Shown here piece after piece: positions 10,105 to 46,943 of a stretch of DNA of 64,000 nucleotides. The notes beneath the pieces were generated by a model. It saw only the letters and a program-made list of their open reading frames with translations. It was not told where the DNA came from and did no database searches. The stretch spans positions 1 through 64,000 of IMG/VR virus record IMGVR_UViG_3300023257_000007, one strand, 5' to 3'. Every line of letters starts with the position of its first letter. The stretch's first letter is position 1. Both the position numbers and the translations under genes were made by a program.

Positions 10105-11751
10105 ATGTTATTAACAAAGAATATTAAAATTAAAATAAATAATAGGTATATAAAATATTATCAAAATCTTGGATATCAGGTAAAAGGCGGTCAAGAATGT
10201 GAAATAAAAATAGAAGATTTATCAAAAAAAAGCCACGCTTTTGTTGATGTTAAATGTGATATATGTCAAGAAGAAAAAACAATTAAATATTATAATTATA
10301 CTGAAAATATACTAAATCAGGGTTTTTACACTTGTAAAAAATGTAAACATCATAAGACAAAAATCACAAATCTAGAGAAATATGGTGTAGAATGTACATT
10401 ACAATCTGATGATGTTTTAGAAAAGATAAAAAATAAAAACATAGAAAAATTTGGCACAGACCATTATTCAAAAACAAATGAATTTAAAGAAAAAATAAAA
10501 GAGACAAATCTAGAAAAATATGGTGTTGAAAGTAATATGCAATCAATCGAATTTAAGGAAAAATCTATATTATTTAATCTGAAAAGTTACGGTGTTGATC
10601 ATTATTCAAAGACTAATGAATTTAAAGAAAAAGTAAAAAAAACAAATTTAGAAAAATATGGTGTTGATCATTATTCAAAAACTGATGAATTCAAGGAGAA
10701 GTTGTCTAAAAACCATTTTTTAAAACTTAAAAAAGAAAACAACAATCTTAAAGAGATAAATGGTGATGAATATGTGATATATTGTGATAAATGTGATAAA
10801 GATTATACTATTCATAAATGGTTATATAAAAATAGAAAAAAGAAATATAAAACTAATACTTGTTTATATTGTAATCCTATAAATTCTTCTAAATCTGGAA
10901 TGGAATTAAAATTATTAGAATTTATAAAAGATAATTATAATGAAAAAATTGTTTATGGTAATAGAAAAATTATACCACCTAAAGAATTAGATATTTATTT
11001 ACCAAATTTAAAATTGGCATTTGAGTTTAATGGTGTATATTGGCACAACGAATTAAACAAACATAACAAATATCATTTAGAAAAAACAGAAAAATGTCTA
11101 GAAAAAGGAATACAATTAATTCATGTTTTTGAAGATGATTGGATTTATAAACAAGATATAGTAAAATCTAGAATTTTGAATTTAATTGGAAAATCTAAAA
11201 AAATATTTGCTCGAAAATGTGAAATTAAATTAGTCAATGATAATAAAGTTATTAGAAATTTTCTAGATGAAAATCATTTACAAGGGTTTGTAGGGAGCAA
11301 AATAAAATTGGGTTTGTATTATAATGATGAATTAGTAAGTTTAATGACTTTTGGAAATTTGAGAAAACCTTTAAATCAGTCAAAAAAGGATGGGTCATTT
11401 GAATTATTAAGATTTTGTAATAAATTGAGCATTTATGTTATTGGTGGTGCTTCAAAATTATTTAATTATTTCTTAAAAAACTATGAAATTTGTGAAATAA
11501 TAAGTTATGCGGATAGAAGTTGGAGTAATGGAAATTTATATGAAAAACTTGGTTTTGAATTTATACATAAAACACAACCTAACTATTATTATATAATAGG
11601 CAATCTTAGAAAACATAGATTTAATTTCAGGAAAGATAAATTAATTAAAGAAGGTTTTGATTCAAATAAAACCGAACATGAAATAATGTTAGAAAGGGAA
11701 ATATATCGAATATATGATAGCGGTAGTTTAAAATATAGTTATTTAATATAA
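10105..11751 (+). CDS. Hef-like free-standing homing endonuclease
   Basis: Paralog of 7642; KTNLEKYGV repeats; ELDIYLPNLKLAFEFNGVYWH. Confidence 0.8.
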   Translation: MLLTKNIKIKINNRYIKYYQNLGYQVKGGQECEIKIEDLSKKSHAFVDVKCDICQEEKTIKYYNYTENILNQGFYTCKKCKHHKTKITNLEKYGVECTLQSDDVLEKIKNKNIEKFGTDHYSKTNEFKEKIKETNLEKYGVESNMQSIEFKEKSILFNLKSYGVDHYSKTNEFKEKVKKTNLEKYGVDHYSKTDEFKEKLSKNHFLKLKKENNNLKEINGDEYVIYCDKCDKDYTIHKWLYKNRKKKYKTNTCLYCNPINSSKSGMELKLLEFIKDNYNEKIVYGNRKIIPPKELDIYLPNLKLAFEFNGVYWHNELNKHNKYHLEKTEKCLEKGIQLIHVFEDDWIYKQDIVKSRILNLIGKSKKIFARKCEIKLVNDNKVIRNFLDENHLQGFVGSKIKLGLYYNDELVSLMTFGNLRKPLNQSKKDGSFELLRFCNKLSIYVIGGASKLFNYFLKNYEICEIISYADRSWSNGNLYEKLGFEFIHKTQPNYYYIIGNLRKHRFNFRKDKLIKEGFDSNKTEHEIMLEREIYRIYDSGSLKYSYLI

Positions 11752-14692: not shown

Positions 14693-16504
14693 TTAATTCT
14701 TAAAAATGTATTTATAATTACCACTATTATATATTCTATAAATACCTCTTTCTATCATTATTTGATGTTCACTTTTATCTAAATCAAAACCTTCTTTAAC
14801 CAACACGTCTTTTCTATATCCAAACCTATATTTTCTCACACCATCTACTACATAATAATAATTTGGTTTAGAAATATGAGATAATTCAAAACCTAAATTT
14901 TCATATAATTTGCCATTTGAATGTGATCTATCTGCATAACTTATTATTTTTTTAAAAAAATAATTTTTAGTAAAATGTTTAAACAATTTTGAAGCACCAC
15001 CAATAACATTAGTATTTAACTTATTACAAAATCTTATAAGTTCAAATTCACCTTCTACACTAGAAGAATTTTGAGACTTTCTTTTTTTACCAAAAGTCAT
15101 TAAAGAAACTAACTCATTTTCATAATAAAGACCTAGTTTAATACTAGAACCAACAAAACCTTGTAAATGATTATCATCTAGAAATTTTCTTATCAATTTA
15201 TTATCTTCAATAACTTTAATTTCACATTTTCTTGCATAAATTCTATTTGGTGTTTTACCTATTTTGTTTAATATTATGGATTTAACTATGTCTTGTTTAT
15301 ACAACCAATCATCTTCCCAAATATGTGTTAGCTGAACACCTTTTTTAAAACAATTATCTGTTTTATTTAAATGATAATTATTATCTTTATTTAATTCGTT
15401 ATGCCAATACAAACCATTAAATTCAAAAGCTAATTTCAAATTTGGTAAATAAATATCTAATTCTAATGGTTTAATAACATCTCTATCTGATGTTTCAATG
15501 ACACCAGTATAATTTTCTTCAATAAAACTTAATAATTGTATTTCTAATCCTGATGTGTGTTGATTAATTGGGTTGCAAATAGTACACAATTCAGTTTTAC
15601 ATTTAACTCTATTTGAAAACAAGGATGAATTAATAATATAATCATGTCCTTTATCACATAATATTGTATATTCTTTATTATCAAAATCAATATTCAAAAA
15701 ATTTAAATAACTATAATTACTTAAAAGATATTTTTTAGTTCTTTTTCTATTATTCTCTTTAATATTTTTTATAACTTTTTCTGTTTGAAAATAATTTTCA
15801 ACACCATATCTTTCTAAGATTGTAGTTTTTCTTTTTTCTTTTAATTCATTAGAATATGATGGATTTTCAACACCATAATTTTCCATTAATGATTTTATTG
15901 ATTTCTCTCTAATTTCTTCTGATTGTTGAGGATACTCTACACCATACTTTTCTAAATTTGTTTTTTTAATTTTATCTTTTATTTCTTCTGATTCAAACGG
16001 ATTTTCAACACCATATTTTTCTAGATTTGTTTTGGATATTTTATCACGTATCTCTTTATTAGATAGAGAAAATTCAACACCATACTTTTCTAGATTTGTT
16101 TGTTTTTGCTTTCTTTTTACACACTCATTTTGAGTAAAATGTTCGACACCATATTTTTCCAAACTTGTTTTTTTAACTCTATCAACATATTCCTCAGTCT
16201 GTGTATAATATTCACTGCCATATTTTTCAAATGTTGTCTTTTTAACTTTTTCTTGAGCACACTTAGAACTACAAGCATAAAACCCACCATTATTAATATT
16301 TTTAACATATTTTTGATACATTAAATCCTTTTCATTATTACAAAAATCACATTTTACTTTTATTTTTACATGACTACCATCAGATAAATATTTAGGATGT
16401 ATATTTAAAATATCTCCCAATTGTACATCTTTCGAATATTCTTCTTTTAGTTTACTTAAATTTCTTTTTGTTACTTTAATTAATGTTTTTTCTGTTAAAA
16501 TCAT
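14693..16504 (-). CDS. Hef-like free-standing homing endonuclease
   Basis: Paralog of 7642/10105 with more KTNLEKYGVE repeats. Confidence 0.8.
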   Translation of the reverse strand: MILTEKTLIKVTKRNLSKLKEEYSKDVQLGDILNIHPKYLSDGSHVKIKVKCDFCNNEKDLMYQKYVKNINNGGFYACSSKCAQEKVKKTTFEKYGSEYYTQTEEYVDRVKKTSLEKYGVEHFTQNECVKRKQKQTNLEKYGVEFSLSNKEIRDKISKTNLEKYGVENPFESEEIKDKIKKTNLEKYGVEYPQQSEEIREKSIKSLMENYGVENPSYSNELKEKRKTTILERYGVENYFQTEKVIKNIKENNRKRTKKYLLSNYSYLNFLNIDFDNKEYTILCDKGHDYIINSSLFSNRVKCKTELCTICNPINQHTSGLEIQLLSFIEENYTGVIETSDRDVIKPLELDIYLPNLKLAFEFNGLYWHNELNKDNNYHLNKTDNCFKKGVQLTHIWEDDWLYKQDIVKSIILNKIGKTPNRIYARKCEIKVIEDNKLIRKFLDDNHLQGFVGSSIKLGLYYENELVSLMTFGKKRKSQNSSSVEGEFELIRFCNKLNTNVIGGASKLFKHFTKNYFFKKIISYADRSHSNGKLYENLGFELSHISKPNYYYVVDGVRKYRFGYRKDVLVKEGFDLDKSEHQIMIERGIYRIYNSGNYKYIFKN

Positions 16505-26651: not shown

Positions 26652-27895
26652 ATAGTCTGTGCTTGGGCAGACGTTCATCTTCGGATGGAGCAGATAAAAC
26701 ATCGTAAGGTGTCGAAAGAGAGGAAGGTCACTTATTCTCGCCAATAGTCTTCGGATTATGGTCAATCTAAGCAAGTCTCATTTTTGTCTTGACCAACAAG
26801 ACAGCCTCAATAGAAAGGGGATAAGATGAAACAACGTGAGTAACGATCTTTGGTAAGAATAAGATGGCTCAATTGCCCGCAAGGGGAACAAAAGTTATCA
26901 AATATAGAATGGGGACATTCCAATATCGTTTAATCCACTCATTAAGTGTTCGTTGATAGATAAGAGATAGAATAGTAGTTCGAATGTGGAAAGTTAGAGC
27001 ATTATTCAGTTTCAAAGGTGTTGAAAGATGTCTTAACAAACGGCACAGTAAGTCCTCCGGGCTGAAACGCATACGAAGGGTCGTATTTTGTAAGGTGAAA
27101 CTTATGAATCGGTGGACAGGCACTTTGTGGTGATATCATTTTTTATTAGCTCACAATGGTAGAGCAGTAGTATTCTAACTAAAGGTAGATGGTTCAATTC
27201 CATCATAAAAAAAGCAAAGTCCCTGTCCGTCTGTTAAGTAAAGGTGCTTAAAACTTTACACTTCGGTGAATAAAGTGGATTCAAAGCTCGCAAGGTAGAG
27301 AATCTTTGATACAGTAGCCTCAACTTTTAACCCTAGCAGGTTATTAACGCCACGATAGTGGTGAGTGTACGCAAAATATCGAGTAACTTAATAGTACTAG
27401 TGATGTAACCACATAAAAAGTTACAGTACAGCTGGTGTACATAGTTGCCTTTCGAGGGATTATGTGGACAATTCAGGAACGAAGAATAGCAACTCTTTGA
27501 TAATCTGAAGAAAGCAAAACATATAATAAACTGTGTGTTTTACCAGTATGACAGTTTTTAGTCTCAAAATTGTTTCTCTATCAAGATAAAAACCTTGACG
27601 TGGTGATAGAGCTTTAAACTAATATTTATCAAATGTGAAAAAAGTAGTAGAAATTAAAAGACGCAACACGCAGCCCGTTCTCTGCGCTACTTCACAAAAA
27701 TGTGAACGATAAAAATCTTCACATTTAAATACACCAAGAATAACACCATCACTGTAGCCCTAAAGGAGTGATGTTGTCGCATAAAAACGATTAGTGTTAG
27801 TGTGTGTTTGAGAAGACGACGGGGGATTTCACAAAAGTAACATGAATCAAGTAGTGTGAAATAAGAAATTCCTCCAAGTTTTCTCGGAAAATTTT
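26652..27895 (+). ncRNA. Giant structured non-coding RNA (GOLLD/ROOL-like), ~1.25 kb; boundaries approximate
   Basis: No plus-strand ORF, GC clearly above flanks. UUCG hairpins at 26674, 26744, 27259, 27448; GNRA hairpins at 26699, 26876; embedded tRNA-like domain; abuts a tRNA array. Confidence 0.75.
27140..27212 (+). tRNA. tRNA-like domain embedded in the giant RNA (degenerate anticodon arm)
   Basis: TTTTTAT/ATAAAAA acceptor, GCTC/GAGC D-stem, GATGG-TTCAATT-CCATC T-arm, 6-nt anticodon loop. Confidence 0.65.
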
Positions 27896-27975
27896 TTTAT
27901 GCAAGAAATAATTTGTATATTGTCAAAAATAGAGAATAAATATTTAATATATAAAAAATAGTAAAAACAGAAACA

Positions 27976-28062
27976 ATGAATAATACTTTTAAACATAATA
28001 GTTCATCTTTTCATAAGTGGTTTAGCCGCTTCGGATCGGGAATGTTATGCCTTAAAAGTTAA
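27976..28062 (+). CDS. Leader peptide 1 (28 aa, Phe/His/Trp-rich)
   Basis: MNNTFKHNSSSFHKWFSRFGSGMLCLKS*, downstream of TAATATATA at 27945 and upstream of a terminator. Confidence 0.7.
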   Translation: MNNTFKHNSSSFHKWFSRFGSGMLCLKS

Positions 28063-28091
28063 GATTAAAAAATATTAATCAACAAAGGGAC

Positions 28092-28129
28092 AAACTCGAT
28101 TCTAACAAGATTCGGGTTTTTTGTTTTTT
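28092..28129 (+). terminator. Attenuator terminator upstream of tRNA-His/Trp/Phe
   Basis: AAACTCGATTCT / AGATTCGGGTTT stem plus U-tract. Confidence 0.78.
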
Positions 28130-28151
28130 ATAAACGTTCTTAAAAATATAT

Positions 28152-28227
28152 GGTGGTTATAGTGTTAGTGGTAGCACGGCAGGTTGTGGTTCTGTTAGGA
28201 TGGATTCAAATTCCATTAATCACCCCA
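28152..28227 (+). tRNA. tRNA-His(GUG)
   Basis: Cloverleaf; GCAGG-TTGTGGT-TCTGT; C73. Confidence 0.88.
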
Positions 28228-28237
28228 AATTTAACAC

Positions 28238-28308
28238 AGGTCTATAGTGTAACGGTAGCATAAGTGATTCCAAACCACTTGGTCCGGGTTCAAATCCTGG
28301 TAGGCCTG
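28238..28308 (+). tRNA. tRNA-Trp(CCA)
   Basis: Cloverleaf; loop TTCCAAA; T-loop TTCAAAT. Confidence 0.9.
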
Positions 28309-28377
28309 CGAGAAGTTTAAATATGGTTAAATGAAGGATGGTTAAAAGGTAGAAAAATGAAATATTAATACAAATTT

Positions 28378-28450
28378 GGAACCGTGGTGTAGGTGGTCTG
28401 CACGATACTCTGAAGAAGTATAGGTACCCGTTCAACTCGGGTCGGTTCCA
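28378..28450 (+). tRNA. tRNA-Phe(GAA)
   Basis: GGAACCG/CGGTTCC acceptor; ATACT-CTGAAGA-AGTAT. Confidence 0.88.
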
Positions 28451-28527
28451 CTTTAAACTTTTAAATTTTAATATATATTAATGTGAAGAAAGAACCAGTT
28501 TTAATGAAAAATAATAAAAATTAACAA

Positions 28528-29274
28528 ATGAAAAAATATACACAATTTAGTAAATCTTTAGAAAAAATCAATCAAAATATGGAATTATTTGAAAAAGCTA
28601 TCGATCAAAATCAAAAAGAAAAAATAGATAGATATATTAATGCAAACAATTACAAAAAAGTTCTATCAGAACTAAAACAAATTATTTTTAATTTAAAAAA
28701 AGAAATTAAAAATTCCAATTTTGATGATTTCATTTATAAACAGAACAATAAAGATATAGAAATAATATATAATCCGACTATTCGTGGTATTTTAACCTAT
28801 TTAGATGGTAAAAGAGTAGAATTTGAATATGGAAAAGAAGAGAATCAACAAAAAATCTTAAACACTATCTATATTGATGGTGAAAGAGACCCATTTTTAG
28901 ATATAACTATTCAACCACCATTTAATCAGATACATATTAATAATGGTTTGCCAGTTTTTATGAAAGGTCTAGGATTAGGTAAAAAAGTTTACAAAAAACT
29001 AATTAAAGATTTTGGTTATCTTTCTTCTTTTAAAGGAATAAAACCTTCTATTGAAAGTGATTTGGTTTGGGATACTTTAGCTGATGATAGAGAATTGTTC
29101 ACTTTTGTGAATGATAACAATATCATTTGTTTTTGGAATGAAGTAGATTATGATATTATAATTATTAAATTGAAAGAATTTTACAAAATAAAAGGACAAA
29201 AAATCTTTGATAACGATTTTAAAAAGTTATATAACTTAACTGATGAAAAAATAGAACAAATAATTAATATATAA
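28528..29274 (+). CDS. Hypothetical protein, possible GNAT-like fold, CTS-like N-terminus
   Basis: MKKYTQF start; KGLGLGKKVY resembles the acetyl-CoA loop. Confidence 0.45.
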   Translation: MKKYTQFSKSLEKINQNMELFEKAIDQNQKEKIDRYINANNYKKVLSELKQIIFNLKKEIKNSNFDDFIYKQNNKDIEIIYNPTIRGILTYLDGKRVEFEYGKEENQQKILNTIYIDGERDPFLDITIQPPFNQIHINNGLPVFMKGLGLGKKVYKKLIKDFGYLSSFKGIKPSIESDLVWDTLADDRELFTFVNDNNIICFWNEVDYDIIIIKLKEFYKIKGQKIFDNDFKKLYNLTDEKIEQIINI

Positions 29275-29292
29275 AGAAAATCAATTTTAAAC

Positions 29293-29541
29293 ATGAAAAT
29301 TAAAAGATATAATGAATCATTAATTGATAATGATAATAACACTAGAGAAGATTTCAATGAAGAAATTGATGATCTAATATCAGAATTAAAGATAAGATAT
29401 AATAATTTTAATAATTTAATTGATTCATACAAAATAATAGAAAAAAGTAAAACAGAAGAATGGGAAAAAGTTAGAAATGAACTAAGAGGCGCATTTGATG
29501 GTTTTAAAAATGAATTAATACAAAAAATTAAAAAATTTTAA
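29293..29541 (+). CDS. Hypothetical protein, CTS-like N-terminus
   Basis: MKIKRYNES. Confidence 0.7.
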   Translation: MKIKRYNESLIDNDNNTREDFNEEIDDLISELKIRYNNFNNLIDSYKIIEKSKTEEWEKVRNELRGAFDGFKNELIQKIKKF

Positions 29542-29544
29542 ATA

Positions 29545-29619
29545 ATGATTATAATTAACATAAATAGTAAATCGAAAAAGAATAGTCGTCTGAAAACGGC
29601 TCGGAATTGTATTACCTAA
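29545..29619 (+). CDS. Leader peptide 2 (24 aa, Ser/Lys control codons)
   Basis: MIIININSKSKKNSRLKTARNCIT*, overlapping alternative hairpins. Confidence 0.68.
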   Translation: MIIININSKSKKNSRLKTARNCIT

Positions 29620-29641
29620 ATTTTTAGGTACAAAGAATTAC

Positions 29642-29671
29642 AAACCGAGTCTGAAAAGATTCGGTTTTTTT
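29642..29671 (+). terminator. Attenuator terminator upstream of tRNA-Lys/Ser array
   Basis: AAACCGAGTC-TGAAAA-GATTCGGTTT plus T-tract, ending 3 nt before tRNA-Lys. Confidence 0.85.
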
Positions 29672-29673
29672 AT

Positions 29674-29751
29674 TGGCCATTAGCTCAGTAGGTTTAGAGC
29701 ATCTGCCTTTTAAGCAGAGAGTCCAGGGTTCGATCCCCTGATGGCCAACCA
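29674..29751 (+). tRNA. tRNA-Lys(UUU), CCA encoded
   Basis: Perfect cloverleaf; TCTGC-CTTTTAA-GCAGA. Confidence 0.95.
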
Positions 29752-29753
29752 AT

Positions 29754-29826
29754 GGATCTGTAGCTCAGTTGGTAGAGCTTCTGCCTTTTAAGCAGAAAGT
29801 CCAGGGTTCGAGTCCGACTAGGTCCA
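29754..29826 (+). tRNA. tRNA-Lys(UUU) second copy with mispaired T-stem (possible pseudogene)
   Basis: Same anticodon arm; T-stem CAGGG vs CCGAC pairs at only 2 of 5 positions. Confidence 0.65.
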
Positions 29827-29830
29827 CTAA

Positions 29831-29945
29831 GGCTTATAACAAATAGGTTGTATTTATAGAGCATTTGTCGGGTTACCGCATGTCACTAAAATGTATATTT
29901 TAAGAGTTACTAGAGATATATGAGGTTCGAATCCTTAATAAGCCA
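29831..29945 (+). pseudogene. Elongated tRNA-like element
   Basis: GGCTTAT/ATAAGCC acceptor and TGAGG-TTCGAAT-CCTTA T-arm around an oversized, non-canonical core. Confidence 0.5.
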
Positions 29946-29949
29946 CTAT

Positions 29950-30033
29950 GGAAAGCGTCCGGTTGGACGAGGGGCTACTCTTGAAAAGTAGTAATGGGTT
30001 ACACCATTAGGGGTTCGAATCCCTTGCTTTCCG
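29950..30033 (+). tRNA. tRNA-Ser(UGA)
   Basis: CTACT-CTTGAAA-AGTAG; long variable arm; G73. Confidence 0.92.
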
Positions 30034-30037
30034 CTAT

Positions 30038-30125
30038 GGAAGAGTACCCAAGTTGGTGAAGGGGCTGGTTTGCTAAACCAGTAGGTCTGAAATACGGCGC
30101 GTGGGTTCGAGCCCCACTTCTTCCG
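30038..30125 (+). tRNA. tRNA-Ser(GCU)
   Basis: CTGGT-TTGCTAA-ACCAG; long variable arm; G73. Confidence 0.92.
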
Positions 30126-30173
30126 CAATTAGGTTTGAAACTCAGTTGGTGACCTACTAAGAAAGATATTTCA

Positions 30174-31060: not shown

Positions 31061-31546
31061 TCACTGTTTTTTCCACCATAGAGTTTGCCAATCAGGATAA
31101 ACAAAACCTTCTGAATCTGGTTTGATTTGCGTATAACTTTCATATCCTTCCATTAAATCTATCGACTCTTTATATTCTTCTCTTTCCGAATTATCCAACA
31201 TCAAATAACCACCCTTCTTTAATTTAGGAAGAGCTTCCTTTACACAGTTAACCCTATCTCTTCCATCTACTAAAATAAAGTCGAAATGTTCATCTGGGAA
31301 AATAGAAACATATACACTATAATCCCTGTTATGTTGATGAAGGGTAACATTTCCGGGAAGGGATTCAGATACTTTTTTAATCCATTCACTGTCATGTTCT
31401 ATACTAATCAAATGACTCACTCGATCAGCTAACCATTTAGTAGAAGCACCTGCACCAAACTCCAAGCAATGCATATCCTTTGTCAAATAAGACTCAAGGA
31501 ACTCAATTTCACCTTCGGTTATCCAAATTATTTTTCTATCAATCAT
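31061..31546 (-). CDS. Class I SAM-dependent methyltransferase
   Basis: CLEFGAGAST, ISIEHD, FDFILVDG, GGYLMLDN. Confidence 0.88.
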   Translation of the reverse strand: MIDRKIIWITEGEIEFLESYLTKDMHCLEFGAGASTKWLADRVSHLISIEHDSEWIKKVSESLPGNVTLHQHNRDYSVYVSIFPDEHFDFILVDGRDRVNCVKEALPKLKKGGYLMLDNSEREEYKESIDLMEGYESYTQIKPDSEGFVYPDWQTLWWKKQ

Positions 31547-31613
31547 AATTTTTATCTATATATATTAAAGAAATTATTTTATTTTCTTAAAAATTTTTGT
31601 ATATTATAACAAA

Positions 31614-31840
31614 TTAATCTAATCGACTATACGCTGATTTTATAAAAAATTAGAGGAAAGTCGGGACAATTTTGCTTAAGGCAGGAGACTTTGGTCGTTC
31701 GTACTGCCGAGGTTGCAACTCAAACAGATCTAGGAGGTGAGCAATTCTATAATGATCGGGTTAGAGGCACTCTTCGGAGAAGTGTAAACACTTAGATAAA
31801 TGTATAGATAAAACAAAATCCCGCTTATGGACTAGGTTAA
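31614..31840 (+). ncRNA. rnpB: Minimal RNase P RNA (~227 nt)
   Basis: CR-I GAGGAAAGTCGGG at 31653, CR-V ACAAAATCCCGCTTA at 31813; the two form P4; P1 closes 31614-31624 with 31830-31840. Confidence 0.85.
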
Positions 31841-31865
31841 TTTTAACTTTTAAATTATTTAAATT

Positions 31866-32150
31866 ATGCAAGATAAATGTAAAATATGTGGTCGTAATGA
31901 AACAACATCATTTCATCATTTAATACCAGTAACATTACATACTAAAAAGTGGTTCAAAAAAAATTACGAAAAAGACTATATGAAATCACACGGTATAGAC
32001 TTATGCAAACAATGTCATAAGGCTATACATAAATTTTGGGATGAAAAAACTTTGGGCAAAAAATTTAATACATTAAAAAGTTTATTAGAAAATCAAAAAA
32101 TTAAAAAACACATTGAATGGGTTATAAAACTAAAACATAATAAAAAATGA
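31866..32150 (+). CDS. Small HNH-family protein
   Basis: CKIC...FHHLIP...LCKQCHKAIH. Confidence 0.75.
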   Translation: MQDKCKICGRNETTSFHHLIPVTLHTKKWFKKNYEKDYMKSHGIDLCKQCHKAIHKFWDEKTLGKKFNTLKSLLENQKIKKHIEWVIKLKHNKK

Positions 32151-32428
32151 CAAAAGACAAAACTAAAGACGAATCTAAAAACGAATCTAAAGAAAAAGAA
32201 GAAAATTTATACTCAATTATTGTATATAATGACGAAGTTAATACATTTGAACATGTTATTGGTTGTCTTATTAAATACTGTAAACATGAATTAACACAAG
32301 CAGAACAATGTACCATGATTATACACAATAATGGTAAATGTGATGTTAAAAAAGGCACATTTAAAGAATTAGAAACTCCTTATTATGCTTTACTTGATTC
32401 TGGGTTATCTGCTGAAATTGAAAATTAA
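32147..32428 (+). CDS. clpS: ClpS N-degron adaptor
   Basis: IIVYNDEVNTFEHVI...IHNNGKC...GLSAEI. Confidence 0.92.
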   Translation: MTKDKTKDESKNESKEKEENLYSIIVYNDEVNTFEHVIGCLIKYCKHELTQAEQCTMIIHNNGKCDVKKGTFKELETPYYALLDSGLSAEIEN

Positions 32429-32510
32429 ATATATGTCTAATAACATATCCTAATTTTTGACTTATTAGAAAATTTCTCGTATATTATTATAAATACTAAA
32501 ACTTCAAATC

Positions 32511-33818
32511 ATGAGAAATATACAAAAATTATCAGAAAAAGAATTAATAGTACATTTAAAATCTATCTATAATAAACAGATAGATATTTATGATAAATTT
32601 GAAAAAACAGGTGAAATTGAACCAATTATTACCGATTTTGATGATCAAGATGCATATAAATATTTTATGCAATATGCAATCTTTAAAACTCACCCAAACG
32701 CAATAGTAAAATTTAAATTTTTTAACCGTGGAAAACATAAATTTCCAGTCGGTTCAGATTATCATATTAAAAAACAAATAGAATCTATGAAAAATCTTAG
32801 ATTCACTCCTGAAATAGAAAGATCATTTAGAAAAAAATTTTCAAATATGAAAGGTGAATCTTATTTTGATGAATCTTTTTATGGTTTTTTAAGAAGTTAT
32901 AGATACGATCCATCTGAAGTTAAAGTAACTCAAACAGGAGAAGATATCGAAATAGAAATAACTGGTTCTTGGTTAAAAACAATTTATTGGGAAACACAAA
33001 TAATGCCGATTTTAACAGAAACTTGGTATATGTTAACTGATCAATATAAAAATATTCATAATTTTGATCATCTATATGATACACACAGAGACAAATATCG
33101 AAGTTTTATAACAGCCGAATCTAATATTGCAGAATTTGGTTTAAGAAGAAGATATTCAAAACTAATACAAGAATTTATCAATATACATTTTATGTGGGAA
33201 TCACCAGCTAGATATATTGGTACGTCTAATTGTATGTTCGCTAGAAAATTTAATGTTAAAGCCATTGGAACACAAGCTCATGAATGGATAATGTTTCATG
33301 CCGCAAAATATGGACCAGAACTAGCAAATAAGATATCTTTAGAAAATTGGGTTAAAGTTTACAGAGGAGAATTAGGTATTGCGTTATCTGATACTTATGG
33401 TACAGACAATTTCTTAAAATCATTTGATACTTTACATAGTAAATTATTTGATGGTGTTAGATGGGATTCTGGTGATTTTAAATTATTTACTGATAAAATA
33501 ATTGGACACTATAAATCATATGGAATTAATCCTAAATCCAAAACAATTGTCTATTCTGATGGTATAAATTCATTTTTAAAAATACGAGATATTATAAGAT
33601 ATGCAAGTGATAAAATTAAATGCACGTTAGGAATTGGTACTTATTTAACAAATGATATTGGTGTACCAACTATGAATATTGTTATTAAAATGACAGAAGC
33701 TAAACCTGAAAAAATGGATTGGAGATATTGTATAAAGACATCTGATTCATCTGGTAAATATACTTATACTGACAAAAAAACATTAAACAGATACTTAGAA
33801 GATTTGAATATAAATTAA
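32511..33818 (+). CDS. pncB: Nicotinate phosphoribosyltransferase
   Basis: TDFDDQDAYK, EFGLRRR, GTQAHEW, SDTY, GVRWDSGD, YSDG, GIGTYLTND. Confidence 0.92.
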   Translation: MRNIQKLSEKELIVHLKSIYNKQIDIYDKFEKTGEIEPIITDFDDQDAYKYFMQYAIFKTHPNAIVKFKFFNRGKHKFPVGSDYHIKKQIESMKNLRFTPEIERSFRKKFSNMKGESYFDESFYGFLRSYRYDPSEVKVTQTGEDIEIEITGSWLKTIYWETQIMPILTETWYMLTDQYKNIHNFDHLYDTHRDKYRSFITAESNIAEFGLRRRYSKLIQEFINIHFMWESPARYIGTSNCMFARKFNVKAIGTQAHEWIMFHAAKYGPELANKISLENWVKVYRGELGIALSDTYGTDNFLKSFDTLHSKLFDGVRWDSGDFKLFTDKIIGHYKSYGINPKSKTIVYSDGINSFLKIRDIIRYASDKIKCTLGIGTYLTNDIGVPTMNIVIKMTEAKPEKMDWRYCIKTSDSSGKYTYTDKKTLNRYLEDLNIN

Positions 33819-33863
33819 ACTAGATAAGAATATAATAATAAAAATAAAAAATAATATAATATT

Positions 33864-34109
33864 ATGGTAAAAAAACAATACATGGGTAAAACAGTGAAAG
33901 AACATTTCGGTTATAAAATAAAACACATGATTCAATTCAGAATGTCAAGAGGACCCAAAGGAAAAGAAATATCTCATCAAGAACCTAGCGGATATTTTGG
34001 TGTATATGCAGGCAAAAATCTATTGTGTGGAAATAAAGAATTCAAAAAAGTAAAAGATGCAGAACAATTTTTATTCAATTATATTAAAAATAAGAAATAT
34101 GAAATTTAA
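33864..34109 (+). CDS. Hypothetical protein
   Basis: Co-directional ORF in the NAD cluster. Confidence 0.6.
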   Translation: MVKKQYMGKTVKEHFGYKIKHMIQFRMSRGPKGKEISHQEPSGYFGVYAGKNLLCGNKEFKKVKDAEQFLFNYIKNKKYEI

Positions 34110-34656
34110 CAACAGACCAAATAAATCAATAAAAAATGATGGTACAACACATTGGATTTCAAGAAGTTGTGCTGTTGTTTCCTATGTATCAGCAAAAATC
34201 GGGAGTGATTTTTATATTTTAGTAGGACAAAGAGGACAAGGCACACCAGACTGTAAAGGTTTGTGGAATTTACCTTGTGGTTATCTAGATTGGAATGAAA
34301 GTGGTAGAGAAGCTTTCTTTAGAGAAATGTGGGAAGAAACTGGTATAAATTGCGAAAAACTTCTAAAAAATTACAAAATTTTTATAAATACAGAAGAACC
34401 TTGGTATATTGATACTAATCCAGACTCACATCTTCAAAATATTTCATTACATTATTCAATTGTATTTGATGCAACTAATTCTATATTACCAGAATTCAGT
34501 ACAGAAAATAGTGAACCTGATGAAGTTGAAAATTTAATGTGGATTAAGATTAAAGACGCTCATAAACTGCATTTTGGTTTTGATCATAAAAAAAGGGTAA
34601 AAGTCTTCAACGAAAAATTTATAATACCATTAGAAAATTCTCTTAAAATATCTTAA
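34099..34656 (+). CDS. NUDIX hydrolase (ADP-ribose pyrophosphatase-like)
   Basis: WNLPCGYLDWNESGREAFFREMWEETG; likely ATG at 34099. Confidence 0.88.
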   Translation: MKFNNRPNKSIKNDGTTHWISRSCAVVSYVSAKIGSDFYILVGQRGQGTPDCKGLWNLPCGYLDWNESGREAFFREMWEETGINCEKLLKNYKIFINTEEPWYIDTNPDSHLQNISLHYSIVFDATNSILPEFSTENSEPDEVENLMWIKIKDAHKLHFGFDHKKRVKVFNEKFIIPLENSLKIS

Positions 34657-34744
34657 TAATTGACATATGTTATATAACATACCAAAAAATATTACAATTA
34701 TAAAAATTTTTCGTATATTTAATTAAACAATAAAAAATATAATT

Positions 34745-35608
34745 ATGAAAAATATAATAAATTACGACAAAGTACTTGAAAATTCAAGATTTTTACTAAA
34801 AGAAAAAATTACAAGAACTAAACTTAAATCATTAGTATTGGGTATTAGTGGTGGAGTTGATTCAGCAATTGTTGCAGCAATTGCTAAACCTATATGTGAT
34901 GAATTAAATATTCCTTTAATAGGAAGATATATTCATATAGAAAGTAATAAGAAAGAAGAAAAAGAAAGAGCTGAAGATATTGGAAAAGCGTTTTGCACTG
35001 ATTTCCAATCAATTGATCTTACAGAATACTTTGATACATTAAAAAATCTAGATGAAATGGATAATGAAGGTTCTCCTTATTCTGAATATGATTATCAATC
35101 AAAATTAATTAGACTTGGTAATATAAAAGCTAGAACAAGAATGATTTATCTTTATAATTTAGCTTCAAAAAATGGTGGTTTAGTATTAGGTACAGACAAT
35201 TTAACTGAATATTATTTGGGATTTTGGACTTTGCACGGTGATGTTGGTGATTTTGGTTTAATTCAAAATCTTTGGAAGTCTGAAGTACATGAATTAACAT
35301 TACATTTAGCTAAAAGTTTAAATGAAAAAGGTAAAGTGTTAGTTGATTGTGCAATGGCAAATGCTACTGATGGTCTTGGAATAAGTGAGACTGATCTAGA
35401 ACAAATTATGCCAGATTGGAAAGAAAGACATAATACAACTGCAAGTGGTTATTCAGAAATTGATAAAAAATTACAATCTTATTTAAAAGATATTAGTAAA
35501 GGAGAAAACATTTCAAAATATAATAATGATCCAGTAATTGAAAGACATAGATCATCTTTCTTCAAAAGAATAAACCCAGAAAGTATAGATAGAGAAGAAT
35601 TAATTTAA
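34745..35608 (+). CDS. nadE: NH3-dependent NAD+ synthetase
   Basis: VLGISGGVDS, GNIKARTRM, GTDNLTE, GFWTLHGD, ATDGL. Confidence 0.94.
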   Translation: MKNIINYDKVLENSRFLLKEKITRTKLKSLVLGISGGVDSAIVAAIAKPICDELNIPLIGRYIHIESNKKEEKERAEDIGKAFCTDFQSIDLTEYFDTLKNLDEMDNEGSPYSEYDYQSKLIRLGNIKARTRMIYLYNLASKNGGLVLGTDNLTEYYLGFWTLHGDVGDFGLIQNLWKSEVHELTLHLAKSLNEKGKVLVDCAMANATDGLGISETDLEQIMPDWKERHNTTASGYSEIDKKLQSYLKDISKGENISKYNNDPVIERHRSSFFKRINPESIDREELI

Positions 35609-42105: not shown

Positions 42106-43161
42106 TTAAAATCCCCAATCATCAAAGTTTTCAAACTCATCTTTATTTTTTTGAATTGTCTGTTGTATTGAACCACTAAATAAACTATTTAATACCGATA
42201 ATCTTTTATTAATATCTGGTAAACCTACTGGTTCTAAAAACCTATTAGCAATTGCCAAAAATGTTTTTTCAAATTGAGTATCATAATCTATCAATACTCT
42301 TTCTTTTTCAGTTATTTCATACGGATGAAAACTTCTCATATAAGCAAACCTCTCTCCAAGAGTATGGTTACAAAAATACCATTTAACTCGACCACCTTTT
42401 AACAAATCATATTTAGTTTTAAACTCGCTATTTTTATTTAAAAGAAAATTATGTAAAGCGGCGGCTTTAACTGAAAAATGAGCACCTTTAACACAATTAA
42501 CACCAATTTGATCATCAACTACTTTATCTCTATAATTTGATAAAGAAGTCGTCATACTAATATCTTCAATATCAGAGGCTTTAAATTGATTTTTAAGATC
42601 TTTCATAATTTTTAAAACCTCACGTATATTTAACGTATCAGGATTTTTAAATAAATAATTAATAAATTCCCAAACACCACCTTTCTGCTTTTGACCTCTA
42701 ACAAATATTGGTGTTGAAGACCTTACAATATCTACACCTTTTGGAAAAAAATGTTCCATATCTTCATAAAAAATACCATCTTCCCAAACCACATTATTAA
42801 TATAATGTTTCTTTTCAAGATGCATGGCAGATTTATTAACAGTTTCTAATTCAAAATCATGAATATTTTTAACACCATACTTTTTAGCATATTGGTCTAA
42901 ATATTTAACAAATGTGTCTTTTACATACAATCTATCAAGGGTTAATATAAATTCAAGAGGATCACCTTCATAATCACAAGAGTCCATTATTGGTTGAAAC
43001 GACAAATATAAACTATTATGAACTAATAAATTATTAGCAATAAAGGTGTGAGTTTCATCATCAACTTCTATATCATAAACATATTCTTCTTCTCCAAAAT
43101 TACCTACACATTCAATTTCTGAAATTTCAACCAATTCATAATTATAACATATATTTTCCAT
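42106..43161 (-). CDS. B-family DNA polymerase C-terminal fragment with split-intein C-half (49 aa)
   Basis: YVYDIEV...FIANNLLVHN|SLY, then ELE...KKHY and KGVDIVRSS thumb motifs. Confidence 0.9.
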   Translation of the reverse strand: MENICYNYELVEISEIECVGNFGEEEYVYDIEVDDETHTFIANNLLVHNSLYLSFQPIMDSCDYEGDPLEFILTLDRLYVKDTFVKYLDQYAKKYGVKNIHDFELETVNKSAMHLEKKHYINNVVWEDGIFYEDMEHFFPKGVDIVRSSTPIFVRGQKQKGGVWEFINYLFKNPDTLNIREVLKIMKDLKNQFKASDIEDISMTTSLSNYRDKVVDDQIGVNCVKGAHFSVKAAALHNFLLNKNSEFKTKYDLLKGGRVKWYFCNHTLGERFAYMRSFHPYEITEKERVLIDYDTQFEKTFLAIANRFLEPVGLPDINKRLSVLNSLFSGSIQQTIQKNKDEFENFDDWGF

Positions 43162-44314
43162 ATATTTCTTTTATTAATTTTTTAATACTCGGCAAATCAC
43201 TTTCCCAAATAACAATGATATCTATATCATGATCCTTTTTTAGAAGTGATAATTTTTCTTCATCTTTTTTCCATATATCAGATGATAATTCATTACTAAA
43301 CGGATTAGGTTTATCATCATGTTTAAATTTTTTAGGATTAGCATGAAAAACATCACCATTATATTCTATACCTAAATTTAATTCTTTTATATAATAATCT
43401 ATAAAAACATATCGACCAGTAGATAACATCTTACCATATTCTTTATTATTACATTTTTCATAAAAATATGTTTTAAAATCTTTTGATATTTCTTTATCTA
43501 ATTTCCACAAATAATCCTGTGAAGATTTTGATGCTGGATAATTCCTTATCTTAGAATAAAATTGTTGTAATTTAATTAAAGCGTCATTTTTACCGTATAT
43601 TCTTATATAATTAGATAAATTGTGTGCTTTTTGTTTACACAATTCATCCCATTTTAATTTACCATGTTTTAACACATAATATTCTTTACTTTTTGTTTCA
43701 ATTTGTTTTTTAACATAATTTTCATATTTTATTTTACCGAATTTTTTGCCATGTTTTTTTATCAAATTTTCTAATGTAACAGATCTTGATTTATTATAAT
43801 TATCAAAATCATCTTTATTCCAACCATGTTTTTCTTTTTTATATTCAAATAAATTTGATTTTCGTTGTTTATCACAATAGATTTCCCATCTTTCAACTCC
43901 TTCATTTACACCATATTTTAAAATATAATTTTCCTTTGTTCTAACGTAGTTTAAATTCTTCCATATTTCAGATTCTTTTTCTGGTATATTAAATGCATAT
44001 GTTGTTATCTTATTTACCATGTTAAATATTCTAGCCCTATTCTTATTTTTATACTCAGGATATTTTTCTATCAAACAATCTTCACAAACACTTAAATTAT
44101 AAATTTTACCATTCACCGATTTAAATGTTTTATAAGATTTGCCTTTGTATCCAAATTTTCTTACAGTAAATACAGAATTATAATAAAATATTGGACCATT
44201 ACAAATTAAACACTTAACAGAATTTTTATCATAAAAATCTTGAATTTCCTCATAATCATCTTTATTGATATTAAATTTAAATTTTTGTAATTTATTTTTC
44301 ATATGGTGACACAT
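43142..44314 (-). CDS. Vsr-like homing endonuclease inside the fractured polymerase gene
   Basis: GIEYNGDVFHANP...IVIWESD; overlaps both pol fragments. Confidence 0.8.
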   Translation of the reverse strand: MCHHMKNKLQKFKFNINKDDYEEIQDFYDKNSVKCLICNGPIFYYNSVFTVRKFGYKGKSYKTFKSVNGKIYNLSVCEDCLIEKYPEYKNKNRARIFNMVNKITTYAFNIPEKESEIWKNLNYVRTKENYILKYGVNEGVERWEIYCDKQRKSNLFEYKKEKHGWNKDDFDNYNKSRSVTLENLIKKHGKKFGKIKYENYVKKQIETKSKEYYVLKHGKLKWDELCKQKAHNLSNYIRIYGKNDALIKLQQFYSKIRNYPASKSSQDYLWKLDKEISKDFKTYFYEKCNNKEYGKMLSTGRYVFIDYYIKELNLGIEYNGDVFHANPKKFKHDDKPNPFSNELSSDIWKKDEEKLSLLKKDHDIDIIVIWESDLPSIKKLIKEIYGKYML

Positions 44315-45305
44315 CTTTATCTCTATATATCCTTAAAATTTTATCAGTTATTTTCATTTCAGAAGGTTTTACTTCAAATTGTTCACCGTCTCTAAAAACT
44401 ATCATAGAATGATCATTTGTTACGAAAATTTCCTCACCTGTTTTTATTTTAATTTTCCATTTTTGTTTAATAACCTTATGTCTTATAACTCTTTTTACTG
44501 GTGCATAATATAGCTTTTTTTCAGAACACCAATTTAAGATTTTTTCACCAGTTTTAACACTCTCATGTCCCTTCAACGTACTCTCACCCACATTTAATGT
44601 ATTTTCGTTGTAAAATTCTTCTATTGTCTTTTCACCATTATTTGTGATAATTACACTATCCTTGTCAACCGAATCCGTATCACCATAAACACACAATTCA
44701 TCTTTATGAAATTTCGTACTATAAGTTTCTTTATCATCTTTTGTCATTTCTGTAAAACCTGGCATTTCTTCTCTTTCAGAAATCACAGAACCATCAATTT
44801 GTTCAACATTATCTACAAAATTATGAAGATGTCTCTTATATTTAATATTATAAATTTTATCTTCAATTTTAATAGAATCTTTGTGTTCTTCTAATTTATC
44901 AATATCAACATTCCATTCTATTAGTAAATCATGTAAAGTATTATTACCCCTTCCAATTATTCTATTTCTATTATTCATCATATACCAAACATCACTATCA
45001 TCAGTTACAATATACGTAAATTCTAATAACTTATGAACTTCAATATCATGATACCATTCTTCATAAAAATATTTTTCTATTTTATTTAACATAAATAAAA
45101 TTACATCTCTACCATGTGCTGTAATAGCATTTGCAATATCTTTATTAGATACTACAAATTTAGGGTGAGCAAAAGCACCATAAGTTCCGTTAATCACTAA
45201 TTTTAGTGCCAATTGCATTGCTTTATTGTAGTTATATTCTGATTCTACTTTTGCGATTTTCTTTTTAAGATTCTCGATTTTTTTCTTTTTCTCGGCGAAC
45301 GTCAT
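44292..45305 (-). CDS. B-family DNA polymerase middle fragment with split-intein N-half (126 aa)
   Basis: Motif B QLALKLVINGTYG; YGDTD|SVDKDS; TNDHS block B. No exonuclease domain or motif A. Confidence 0.9.
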   Translation of the reverse strand: MTFAEKKKKIENLKKKIAKVESEYNYNKAMQLALKLVINGTYGAFAHPKFVVSNKDIANAITAHGRDVILFMLNKIEKYFYEEWYHDIEVHKLLEFTYIVTDDSDVWYMMNNRNRIIGRGNNTLHDLLIEWNVDIDKLEEHKDSIKIEDKIYNIKYKRHLHNFVDNVEQIDGSVISEREEMPGFTEMTKDDKETYSTKFHKDELCVYGDTDSVDKDSVIITNNGEKTIEEFYNENTLNVGESTLKGHESVKTGEKILNWCSEKKLYYAPVKRVIRHKVIKQKWKIKIKTGEEIFVTNDHSMIVFRDGEQFEVKPSEMKITDKILRIYRDKDVSPYEK

Positions 45306-45341: not shown

Positions 45342-46943
45342 TTAAAAGTTTAATGAATATTTTATATTACCACTGTTATATATTCTATAAATACCTCTTT
45401 CTAACATTATTTCGTGTTCACTTTTATTAGGATCATAACCTTCTCTAACTAAAACATCTTTTCTAAAATTATACCTATATAATCGTTTTAAATTTTTACC
45501 ATCAAAATAATGATAATTCGGTTTTGTGTTATGAACGAATTTAAATTCCAATTTTTCATATAGATTTCCTTTACTCCAGCTTCTATCAGCATAAGTAATT
45601 ATTTCACCCGGATTATAATTTCTGATAAAATATTTAAATAATTTTGATGCACCACCAACAACATTAATATTTAATTTGTTACAAAACCTTAACAATTCAT
45701 ACTCTCCTTCTATACTTTTAGACCCCATTAATTTTCTTTTTTTACCAAAGGTCATTAGAGATACTAATTCATCTTCATAATAAAGACCTATTTTAACAAA
45801 AGAACCAACAAAACCTTGAAGATGATTATCATTTAAAAAATTTCTAATCAATTTATTATCTATTATCTCTTTAATTATAGTTTTTCTAGCATATATTTTA
45901 TCAGACTTTCCAATCATATTTAATATTCTAGACTTGACAATTTCTTTTTGGTTAAACCATTCATCTTCCCAAATATGTATTAATTGAACACCTTTTTTTA
46001 AACAATTGTTTGTTTTATTTAAATGATAATCCTTATCCTTATAAAGTTCTGAATGCCAATACAAACCATTAAATTCAAAAGCTAGATTTAAATCTGGTAA
46101 ATAAATATCTAATTCTTTTCCATCCAAGATCTCTTTATCACTTGTTATTATTTCATAATTATAGTTTTCTTTAATAAAATTCACGATTTCTAATTCTTTA
46201 CCTGAAATCTTATAATCTAATGTATTACAAACTGTGCATAATATTGTTTTTTGTATTTTATATCTTTGATATAAATTTTTGCTATTAATATTAAAATAAT
46301 GATCTTTACCACAATCACATTTAACATCTATCGTTCGATCAGTATTTAAAATATAATCTGTTATATTATATTCCGATAATTTAAATAATATATCTTTTTC
46401 CCACCTTTTATATGTTAACAAATAATATGATTCTGTTTGTGTATACCATTCTTTTCCATATTTTTCAAGATTAGTTTTCTTTATTTTCTCTCTAATTTCA
46501 TATGAAGAAAGTATCTCTTCCACGCCATATTTTTCAAGATTTGTTTTTTTAATTTTTTCTTTGACATCTTTATCTAATAATGTACAAGTAACGCCATATT
46601 TCTTGAGGTTTGTTTGTTTTGTTTTATCTTTTATTTCTTTTATGTGTTGTGGATTTTCAACGCCATATTTTTCTAACATTGTATTTTTTCTTTTAATAGA
46701 AGAACATTTTTTACAACTATAAAAACCTTGTCTTTTTTTATTTTCTAAATATTTATGATATCTTAGTTGTTTTTCATCTGAACATATCTCACAAACAGCA
46801 ATTACTTTAACATGTGAATTTTGTGGCAAATCATTAACATCAATGTCCAATGTTTCACCATTATTACAAACATAATTTTTAGATCTATAATATGTTACAT
46901 TACGATATGTTATATTAACATCAATTCTACTATTTTTAATCAT
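45342..46943 (-). CDS. Hef-like free-standing homing endonuclease
   Basis: Fourth paralog; ELDIYLPDLNLAFEFNGLYWH. Confidence 0.8.
   Translation of the reverse strand: MIKNSRIDVNITYRNVTYYRSKNYVCNNGETLDIDVNDLPQNSHVKVIAVCEICSDEKQLRYHKYLENKKRQGFYSCKKCSSIKRKNTMLEKYGVENPQHIKEIKDKTKQTNLKKYGVTCTLLDKDVKEKIKKTNLEKYGVEEILSSYEIREKIKKTNLEKYGKEWYTQTESYYLLTYKRWEKDILFKLSEYNITDYILNTDRTIDVKCDCGKDHYFNINSKNLYQRYKIQKTILCTVCNTLDYKISGKELEIVNFIKENYNYEIITSDKEILDGKELDIYLPDLNLAFEFNGLYWHSELYKDKDYHLNKTNNCLKKGVQLIHIWEDEWFNQKEIVKSRILNMIGKSDKIYARKTIIKEIIDNKLIRNFLNDNHLQGFVGSFVKIGLYYEDELVSLMTFGKKRKLMGSKSIEGEYELLRFCNKLNINVVGGASKLFKYFIRNYNPGEIITYADRSWSKGNLYEKLEFKFVHNTKPNYHYFDGKNLKRLYRYNFRKDVLVREGYDPNKSEHEIMLERGIYRIYNSGNIKYSLNF

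Follow-up and report, generated by a model that had tools for sequence, protein, structure and literature searches.

A miniature RNase P RNA with a reduced specificity domain encoded in huge-phage DNA

RESULTS

Genomic setting of the RNA

The sequence analysed is a 64,000-nt stretch (the window; positions 1 to 64,000 of IMG/VR record IMGVR_UViG_3300023257_000007) of a phage genome of roughly 345 kb. It has a base composition of 22–30% GC and encodes a large terminase, a primase, an SbcC-like nuclease, a gp25 baseplate protein and four paralogous homing endonucleases, together with IF3, DHFR, ClpS, an NAD-salvage cluster, a two-component system and a PolB fragment with an intein. The RNA region described here is identical on IMG/VR and JGI contigs of 344,634 and 348,222 bp, and the only GenBank phage records with a related stretch are the 735,411-bp uncultured phage records LR756501 and LR756503. 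The window is huge-phage DNA.

Positions 31614–31840 of the plus strand lie in a 320-nt intergenic gap between a minus-strand methyltransferase gene (31061–31546) and a small plus-strand ORF (31866–32150) that encodes a basic, HNH-like product of 94 aa. The gap contains a 227-nt RNA gene derived from bacterial type A RNase P RNA (RPR), in which the specificity domain (S-domain) of roughly 120 nt is replaced by a conserved 29-nt hairpin stub. Its parts, all on the plus strand, are as follows.

31614–31840: whole miniature RNase P RNA gene, from the P1 5′ strand to the P1 3′ strand (227 nt)
31614–31625: P1 5′ strand, pairing with 31828–31840
31627–31632: P2 5′ strand (CUAUAC), pairing with 31802–31807 (GUAUAG)
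31634–31653: P3 hairpin (8-bp stem, AUAA loop)
31653–31667: CR-I (GAGGAAAGUCGGGAC), J3/4 and the P4 5′ strand (31658–31666), with the bulged U at 31661 (E. coli U69); A31657–31659 correspond to E. coli A65–A67
31667–31670: P5 5′ strand (CAAU), pairing with 31712–31715 (GUUG)
31672–31678: P6 pseudoknot 5′ strand (UUGCUUA), pairing with the L17 loop at 31738–31744 (UGAGCAA)
31680–31711: stub replacing the S-domain, made of a P7-like helix (31680–31684 with 31704–31708), a 5′ GA, an inner hairpin (31687–31696), the 3′ loop GUUCGUA (31697–31703) and the linker GAG (31709–31711)
31716–31718: J5/15 (CAA), in which A31717 corresponds to E. coli A248
31719–31766: P15-P16-P17 arm, with P15 (31719–31721 with 31764–31766), P16 (31727–31730 with 31754–31757), P17 (31733–31735 with 31745–31747) and the J16/15 GGU at 31759–31761, corresponding to E. 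coli G292-G293-U294, the 3′-RCCA binding site
31770–31793: extra hairpin (31770–31779, UUCG loop) followed by the P18 hairpin (31780–31793, UAAA loop)
31794–31801: CR-IV / J18/2 (AGAUAAAU)
31813–31827: CR-V (ACAAAAUCCCGCUUA) / J2/4 and the P4 3′ strand (31819–31826)
27139–30126: same-strand array of 8 tRNAs, the presumed substrates, among them a Lys tRNA with an encoded CCA (29674–29751) and a Lys tRNA without one (29754–29827); a ninth tRNA, a suppressor, lies at 55154–55226

The first-pass annotation, made from sequence alone, had noted CR-I, CR-V, P1 and P4 within about 227 nt, and this observation is confirmed. Its accompanying statements also hold: most of the S-domain is absent, the nearest tRNA ends at 30126, 1.49 kb away, 7 of the 9 window tRNAs lack an encoded CCA, and one tRNA-like element (27139–27213, anticodon CTA, all-A/T acceptor stem) is aberrant and lies inside a GOLLD-like RNA (27073–27541). 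The tRNAs were identified with ARAGORN and Rfam, and 6 of 9 have U at position −1.

Homology to bacterial type A RNase P RNA

A search with the Rfam RNase P models, a check proposed with the first-pass annotation, supports the identification but shows why routine annotation misses it. A permissive scan of the 601 nt from 31400 to 32000 aligns RNaseP_bact_a (RF00010) end to end (model positions 1–367) at 31615–31843 with 59.1 bits and an E-value of 1.6e-17, this being the best match within the RNase P clan. P1, P2, P3, CR-I, P5, P15–P17, J18/2 and CR-V are all aligned, whereas about 140 model positions of the S-domain are replaced by about 41 nt. The score is below the gathering score of 100 bits; the hit is consequently absent from the default scan of the window, which reports only tRNAs, and is lost to the filters even in a permissive scan of the whole 64 kb, although the latter finds the GOLLD-like RNA. 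Similarly, a permissive Rfam scan of the copy in the 735-kb phage (locus L001) gave no RNase P hit, although the element is present and was recovered by blastn and by the family model described below. The minimum free energy fold of the single sequence is uninformative (z = −1.5), and a promoter and terminator scan found nothing above chance.

Because global alignment of E. coli rnpB with the family model failed (16 bits), correspondence with E. coli M1 RNA (377 nt) was established by motif. CR-I corresponds to E. coli positions 61–75, CR-IV to about 328–336 (E. coli UAGAUGAAUG) and CR-V to 347–361. A248, which contacts the pre-tRNA N−1 position (PMC10465520), corresponds to A31717. E. coli has 164 nt between the two P5 strands, compared with 41 nt here, comprising the P6 5′ strand and the stub; P8–P14, CR-II and CR-III, and with them the T-stem-loop binding site, are absent.

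A family of relatives in phage and metagenome contigs

Relatives were sought with a degenerate pattern of CR-I and CR-V in which the covarying P4 positions were left free. In viral contigs, 10 loci were found with a gap of 120–150 nt, 7 with 151–181 nt and 1 with 89–119 nt, while the 120–150-nt gap found 28 loci in metagenome contigs. Together with the window and the 735-kb phage copy, these give 39 distinct cores. A covariance model built from a 14-sequence seed (R1) recovered all 39, of which about 28 score 97–204 bits (197.7 bits for the window) and form what we term the mini class; one more (locus L056) was added later, giving about 29 distinct members from viral, metagenome and GenBank phage records. 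A model built only from relatives in other phages (R2; 16 seeds, none from the window) finds exactly one hit in the 64 kb, at 31611–31845 (177.1 bits, E = 4.7e-43), far beyond chance. Partly reduced phage and CPR-like forms among the loci found here (L006, L013, L015, L016, L020 and L031) keep part of the S-domain, with P8/P9-like hairpins and a GUGAAACGG-type CR-II/III segment, and score only 44–94 bits with R1.

In one genome for each of 185,579 bacterial and archaeal species, the same pattern found only 4 loci: a CPR (Shapirobacteria) MAG, an Acidimicrobiia MAG contig in which the match is interrupted by Ns, a short contig from a Gammaproteobacteria MAG, and a 367-kb ‘Gemmataceae’ MAG contig whose element is of the mini class, is followed by a tRNA 11 nt later and is probably a mis-binned phage.

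With larger gaps the pattern finds further viral contigs: 7 at 182–212 nt, 6 at 213–243, 23 at 244–274 and 6 at 275–305. Most of these also sit in same-strand tRNA arrays on contigs of up to 385 kb, although a subset without tRNAs, at contig ends, looks like host rnpB at provirus borders. Thirteen of the 15 tested pass the Rfam threshold at 103–277 bits, some lie near GOLLD RNA or tmRNA, and they score only 25–76 bits with the mini-class model. Phage-encoded RPRs in tRNA arrays therefore seem common, and the window RNA belongs to the most reduced, sub-threshold class, the small end of a size continuum rather than an isolated oddity.

Covariation supports the catalytic core

RNAalifold on 14 sequences independently returned P1 (10 bp), P2 (6), P5 (4), a 5-bp P7-like helix enclosing a 3-bp hairpin, P15 (3), P16 (4) and P17 (3), with compensatory changes in 32 of 40 pairs. 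On the 39-row alignment, 94.9% of cells form standard pairs, compared with a mean of 61.3% when shuffled (0 of 500 shuffles reach the observed value) and 32–45% when the 3′ partner is slid; 36 of 40 pairs have changes on both sides, and the covariation score is 0.713, against 0.17 shuffled and below 0.1 slid. This alignment was fitted to the model, which inflates pairing somewhat, but the MAFFT and RNAalifold result is independent of that fitting. All 10 P1 pairs show changes on both sides across the 39 sequences, all 6 P2 pairs are compensatory (97.4% of cells paired), as are 3 of 4 P5 pairs (98.7%), all 10 pairs of the P15-P16-P17 arm, and both helices of the stub covary. A CU...AG-closed P3 hairpin of 3–9 bp is present in 26 of 28 mini-class members.

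The two pseudoknotted helices that define the core also covary. The free P4 position is A-U in 18 sequences, G-C in 14 and C-G in 5 of 38, and the 735-kb phage copy has two further compensated swaps in otherwise universal P4 pairs. P6, between J5/7 and the P17 loop, occurs as 18 distinct complementary strand pairs among 27 members, with 89% having at least 6 contiguous base pairs, against 18% for shuffled loops.

A non-functional, decaying fragment of a captured host rnpB gene might be suggested by the sub-threshold score, the missing domain and the very AT-rich genome. However, about 29 diverged relatives (locus GC 30–60%) keep the same architecture, compensatory changes occur in every helix and both pseudoknots, the catalytic-core nucleotides are invariant, and the pattern is found only four times in the species-level genome set described above. 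We regard this reading as effectively refuted by the covariation.

The stub is built the same way in every mini-class member: a 5-bp helix, GA, a hairpin of at least 3 bp and a 7-nt loop of consensus G-Y-U-N-N-N-A, in which the U at −5 and the A at −1 are nearly invariant, followed by a GAG linker leading into P5. A K-turn was considered and rejected on inspection, because the position that should be G in the tandem G·A pairs is variable. The GCAA linker containing J5/15 is near-invariant in the alignments, as is CR-IV (AGAUAAAU) before the P2 3′ strand, and NGGUW in J16/15 is invariant in the mini class. P18 and the extra hairpin preceding it are present only in the window and nine other members (L001, L007, L012, L014, L017, L018, L033, L037 and L051); P18 mostly carries a GNRA loop in those members but UAAA in the window, and the remaining members lack both hairpins.

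Genetic linkage to tRNA genes

The only recurrent neighbours are tRNA genes. Of 38 distinct loci, 25 have tRNAs within 5 kb, all but one of those tRNAs being on the strand of the RNA, and in 14 loci a tRNA lies within 25 nt; 13 loci show no tRNA nearby, many of them short contigs. In the window, by contrast, the RNA lies 1.49 kb downstream of the 8-tRNA array and four minus-strand ORFs separate the two, so it is not co-transcribed with the array and is probably its own transcription unit. A tblastn search of 14 window ORFs against all other loci gave no hits, and no protein neighbour is conserved.

It is possible, though unlikely, that the RNA is an active RNase P-type ribozyme whose main substrates are not tRNAs but the neighbouring GOLLD-like RNA, tmRNA, or phage mRNAs and operon transcripts. 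GOLLD RNAs lie near the RPR in the window and in loci L056 and L083, tmRNA lies beside it in loci L009 and L054, bacterial RNase P processes tmRNA and some other RNAs, and loss of the T-loop-binding domain would fit non-tRNA substrates. However, tRNAs are by far the most consistent neighbours, GOLLD and tmRNA are present in only a few loci, and the GGU that binds RCCA ends is invariant.

Searches for a protein partner

No RnpA was identified in phage data by four approaches, each of limited sensitivity and not proof of absence. A tblastn search of E. coli RnpA against 50,697 phage records gave 12 hits, several of which look like host DNA or unverified records (for example, rpmH-rnpA-yidD synteny in ‘Acinetobacter phage MD-2021a’) and none of which is an uncultured huge-phage record. 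A Pfam search of 52 small window ORFs gave no Ribonuclease_P match. A pattern search of viral contigs with a 5-sequence RnpA alignment, followed by tblastn, gave 52 pattern hits, none confirmed. Finally, a search of that profile against 4,253 ORFs from 780 kb of the window and RPR-bearing loci gave a best E-value of 1.7, while positive controls scored 148–156 bits. These results are consistent with reliance on the host protein, but as only 64 kb of the roughly 345-kb genome was searched and the viral-collection search is pattern-based, a phage-encoded or unrelated protein partner is not excluded.

DISCUSSION

[quoted passage not shown] The interpretation in the first-pass annotation, a catalytic-domain-only ribozyme with relaxed substrate range using host RnpA, is thus partly supported: the identity is strongly supported, but the RNA is not strictly C-domain-only, since the stub with its almost invariant internal loop is present in all members, which argues for a retained function there, while relaxed substrate range and use of host RnpA remain inferences.

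It is most likely that the element is the gene for a phage-supplied catalytic subunit of RNase P, descended from a bacterial type A RPR, and we hold this explanation with reasonable confidence. The analysis itself establishes that the RNA folds into the RNase P catalytic core, with P1–P5, the P4 helix and its bulged U, the P6 pseudoknot, the P15–P17 arm carrying the GGU, and CR-I, CR-IV and CR-V, that the family is under strong selection for this structure, and that it is carried by large phages and genetically tied to their tRNA genes. What follows is inferred from sequence alone, including expression, RnpA binding and cleavage activity. During infection the RNA would be transcribed, from its own unit in the window and as part of the tRNA array transcript in many relatives, and would assemble with host RnpA, whose binding surface lies in the retained C-domain. 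The resulting enzyme would remove 5′ leaders from the phage's own pre-tRNAs, adding or securing RNase P capacity when the phage expresses many tRNAs; where a tRNA follows directly, that cleavage would also create the 3′ end of the RPR itself. As a weaker inference, losing the T-loop-binding S-domain would make the enzyme depend mainly on the acceptor stem, the leader and the 3′ end, which could broaden or shift its substrate range, while the stub may keep a minimal structural or substrate-contact role.

This view is consistent with published biochemistry. The isolated E. coli C-domain RPR (Eco CP RPR), a laboratory construct of essentially the same content, cleaves substrates with and without C5, depends on a P6-type interaction and does not need P18, whose normal docking partner P8 lies in the S-domain (PMC5839562), matching universal P6 retention and frequent P18 loss in the family. 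However, removal of the S-domain lowers E. coli RPR activity about 500-fold in vitro (PMC5839562), so that efficiency of the phage RNA in vivo is uncertain; the phage RNA differs in being natural, under selection and equipped with the additional conserved stub. S-domain-less type T RPRs are reported as active (PMC7191817), and phages already carry ribozymes for tRNA 3′ processing (PMC10879173).

Alternatively, the RNA may be a functional RNase P that does not use host RnpA, acting alone or with an unrelated phage-encoded protein that substitutes for RnpA and perhaps for the lost S-domain. Type T archaeal RPRs raised the same question of a missing specificity component (PMC3579882), the invariant stub could be a protein-binding site, and most of the 345-kb genome lies outside the window. 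We consider this unlikely, as no protein gene is conserved next to the RNA across loci, the downstream HNH-like ORF is not conserved elsewhere, and the regions that bind RnpA in bacterial RPRs lie in the C-domain and are retained. Less probable still is a decoy that titrates host RnpA, or competes with host RPR, to shut down host tRNA maturation without being an enzyme. Such a role would fit retention of the protein-binding domain without the substrate-recognition domain, and phages often sequester host factors; however, nucleotides needed for catalysis and substrate contact rather than protein binding are conserved (the P4 bulged U, J3/4, J18/2, J2/4, the A248 equivalent and the GGU), the phage's own tRNAs need RNase P and the RNA is embedded in their arrays, and larger phage RPRs with full S-domains occupy the same context.

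Relative to bacterial type A RPR, of which E. coli M1 RNA is an example, the phage RNA shares the C-domain, with P18 in the window, but is 227 nt rather than about 350–400, lacks the S-domain, scores below the gathering threshold, is encoded by a virus and in relatives is embedded in tRNA arrays. Archaeal type T RPR (PMC3579882), reported only in Thermoproteaceae (PMC3579882, PMC7191817), likewise keeps the C-domain, lacks most of the S-domain, is missed by the standard Rfam model for its lineage and raises the question of how substrates are recognised without the S-domain. It is, however, a cellular gene with archaeal protein partners and an archaeal C-domain (3-bp P2, shortened P15, 2-nt P5/P15 linker), whereas the phage RNA has a 6-bp P2, a GCAA linker and bacterial P6, P15–P17 and P18 features; the reduction is therefore convergent rather than homologous. 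Diverged RPRs of CPR bacteria (PMC8172020), like the partly reduced forms found here, are reduced bacterial RPRs that need sub-threshold searches and have lost peripheral helices such as P12–P14 and P16–P18, but the latter forms keep part of the S-domain. Fungal mitochondrial RNase P RNAs are of bacterial descent and naturally reduced to little more than P1, P4, CR-I and CR-V, but they sit in organelle genomes, depend on dedicated nuclear-encoded proteins and have lost much of the C-domain periphery, while the phage RNA keeps a complete type A C-domain. Theta (HDV-like) ribozymes are also phage-encoded, dedicated to maturing phage tRNAs and physically linked to tRNA genes, including suppressor tRNAs (PMC10879173), but are unrelated in fold and chemistry, being self-cleaving and acting on 3′ trailers, whereas this RNA would act in trans on 5′ leaders. 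Searches of the full-text literature, which could not extend to subscription-only sources and so do not guarantee priority, found no report of a phage-encoded RNase P RNA of any size, and the main huge-phage paper does not mention RNase P.

A more speculative and doubtful possibility is that the invariant stub is a new minimal substrate-recognition or domain-docking module, possibly T-loop-like, that functionally replaces the S-domain. On this reading, huge phages would run a compact RNase P of their own for their tRNA arrays and suppressor tRNAs, partly independent of host RNase P RNA, and in many genomes the ribozyme would be excised from the array transcript by the same tRNA-processing cuts it catalyses.

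RNase P RNA is one of the few ribozymes shared by all cellular domains and, outside organelles, the only natural form reported to lack the S-domain is archaeal type T. A bacterial-lineage, S-domain-less RPR that is virus-encoded and widespread would expose a blind spot in annotation, because the class fails both the filters and the threshold of Rfam. It would provide a natural, evolution-tested minimal catalytic domain of about 200–230 nt, with about 29 sequence variants, for structural and mechanistic work, and would make testable the long-standing question of how RNase P can recognise tRNA without the T-loop-binding domain. It would also add RNase P to the list of translation-related functions carried by huge phages, and would suggest that tRNA maturation, and not only tRNA supply, is contested or limiting during phage infection.

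The window carries a sub-threshold but full-length match to GOLLD RNA upstream of the RNase P RNA (RPR), and this contains an unusual tRNA-like element. The features of the window that are relevant here are as follows.

27073-27541 (+), GOLLD RNA match (93.9 bits against a gathering score of 150, E 3.1e-23)
27139-27213 (+), tRNA-like element within the GOLLD match, with anticodon CTA and an acceptor stem made only of A/T
55154-55226 (+), tRNA with anticodon CTA
7642-9219 (+), 10105-11751 (+), 14693-16504 (-) and 45342-46943 (-), four paralogous homing/HNH endonuclease genes of 525-603 aa (phrog_3339)
42106-43161, intein C-terminal piece
44292-45305, PolB fragment fused to an intein splicing domain
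32147-35608 (+), and one of the small ORFs in 3088-62649, auxiliary genes, with ClpS, NAPRTase, NUDIX and NAD synthase in a row just downstream of the RPR
3598-4647, histidine kinase

GOLLD scores above threshold near RPRs and tRNA arrays at two other RPR-bearing loci, L083 (5070-5488) and L056 (2630-3102). The anticodon CTA, carried by both the element at 27139-27213 and the tRNA at 55154-55226, is amber-reading, and ARAGORN calls both as tRNA-Pyl. Among 50 long stop-to-stop ORFs, TAG is the terminating codon in only 3, compared with 41 for TAA and 6 for TGA.

The copy of the miniature RPR in the 735-kb phage (locus L001, 4972-5208 (+), corresponding to LR756501.1 around 181.3 kb) has changed nucleotides in the most conserved part of RNase P, with CR-I reading GAGGAAGUUCGCGAC and CR-V reading ACAGGAUCGCGGCUA, although P4 is kept by compensated swaps. 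This copy is not detected by Rfam even in permissive mode. A tandem arrangement was observed at locus L049, where a partial mini-RPR copy (734-866 (+), model positions 43-169), with the CR-I variant GAGGAAGUUC and no CR-V, lies directly upstream of a complete copy (869-1075 (+)). A phage-type mini RPR, followed 11 nt later by a tRNA-Thr, is also found on a 367-kb contig assigned to a ‘Gemmataceae’ MAG (locus L023, CALDUY010000005.1). This element closely resembles those on the viral contigs L014 and L017. It is likely that the contig is a huge-phage genome binned with a bacterial MAG.

Viral contigs of up to 385 kb (loci L053-L094) carry near-full-size type A RNase P RNAs, scoring 103-277 bits, inside same-strand tRNA arrays (for example L093, 6074-6431; L076, 1111-1452; and L094, 6330-6684), and some of these lie near tmRNA (L054) or GOLLD. 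We found no publication describing phage-encoded RPRs of any size. RnpA hits were obtained in the collection of GenBank phage records (CAKLQH020000026.1, MG065691.1, OR844989.1 and others); however, these fall in records that look like host DNA or are flagged as unverified, as illustrated by the rpmH-rnpA-yidD synteny in ‘Acinetobacter phage MD-2021a’ and by an rnpA identical to that of E. coli in ‘Campylobacter phage A11a’.

In addition to the auxiliary genes downstream of the RPR, the window encodes IF3, DHFR and, together with the histidine kinase, two response regulators. Mobile-element activity is heavy in the region that holds the four endonuclease paralogues and the two intein-containing segments.

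A second reduced RPR architecture is seen at loci L013 (289-557), L015 (350-591), L016 (8364-8621) and L006 (674-888), where P8/P9-like hairpins and a GUGAAACGG-type CR-II/III segment are kept but P15-P17 is shrunk to a hairpin. This form is wedged between tRNAs in arrays, and the CPR-like cellular forms (L020 and L031) look similar to it.
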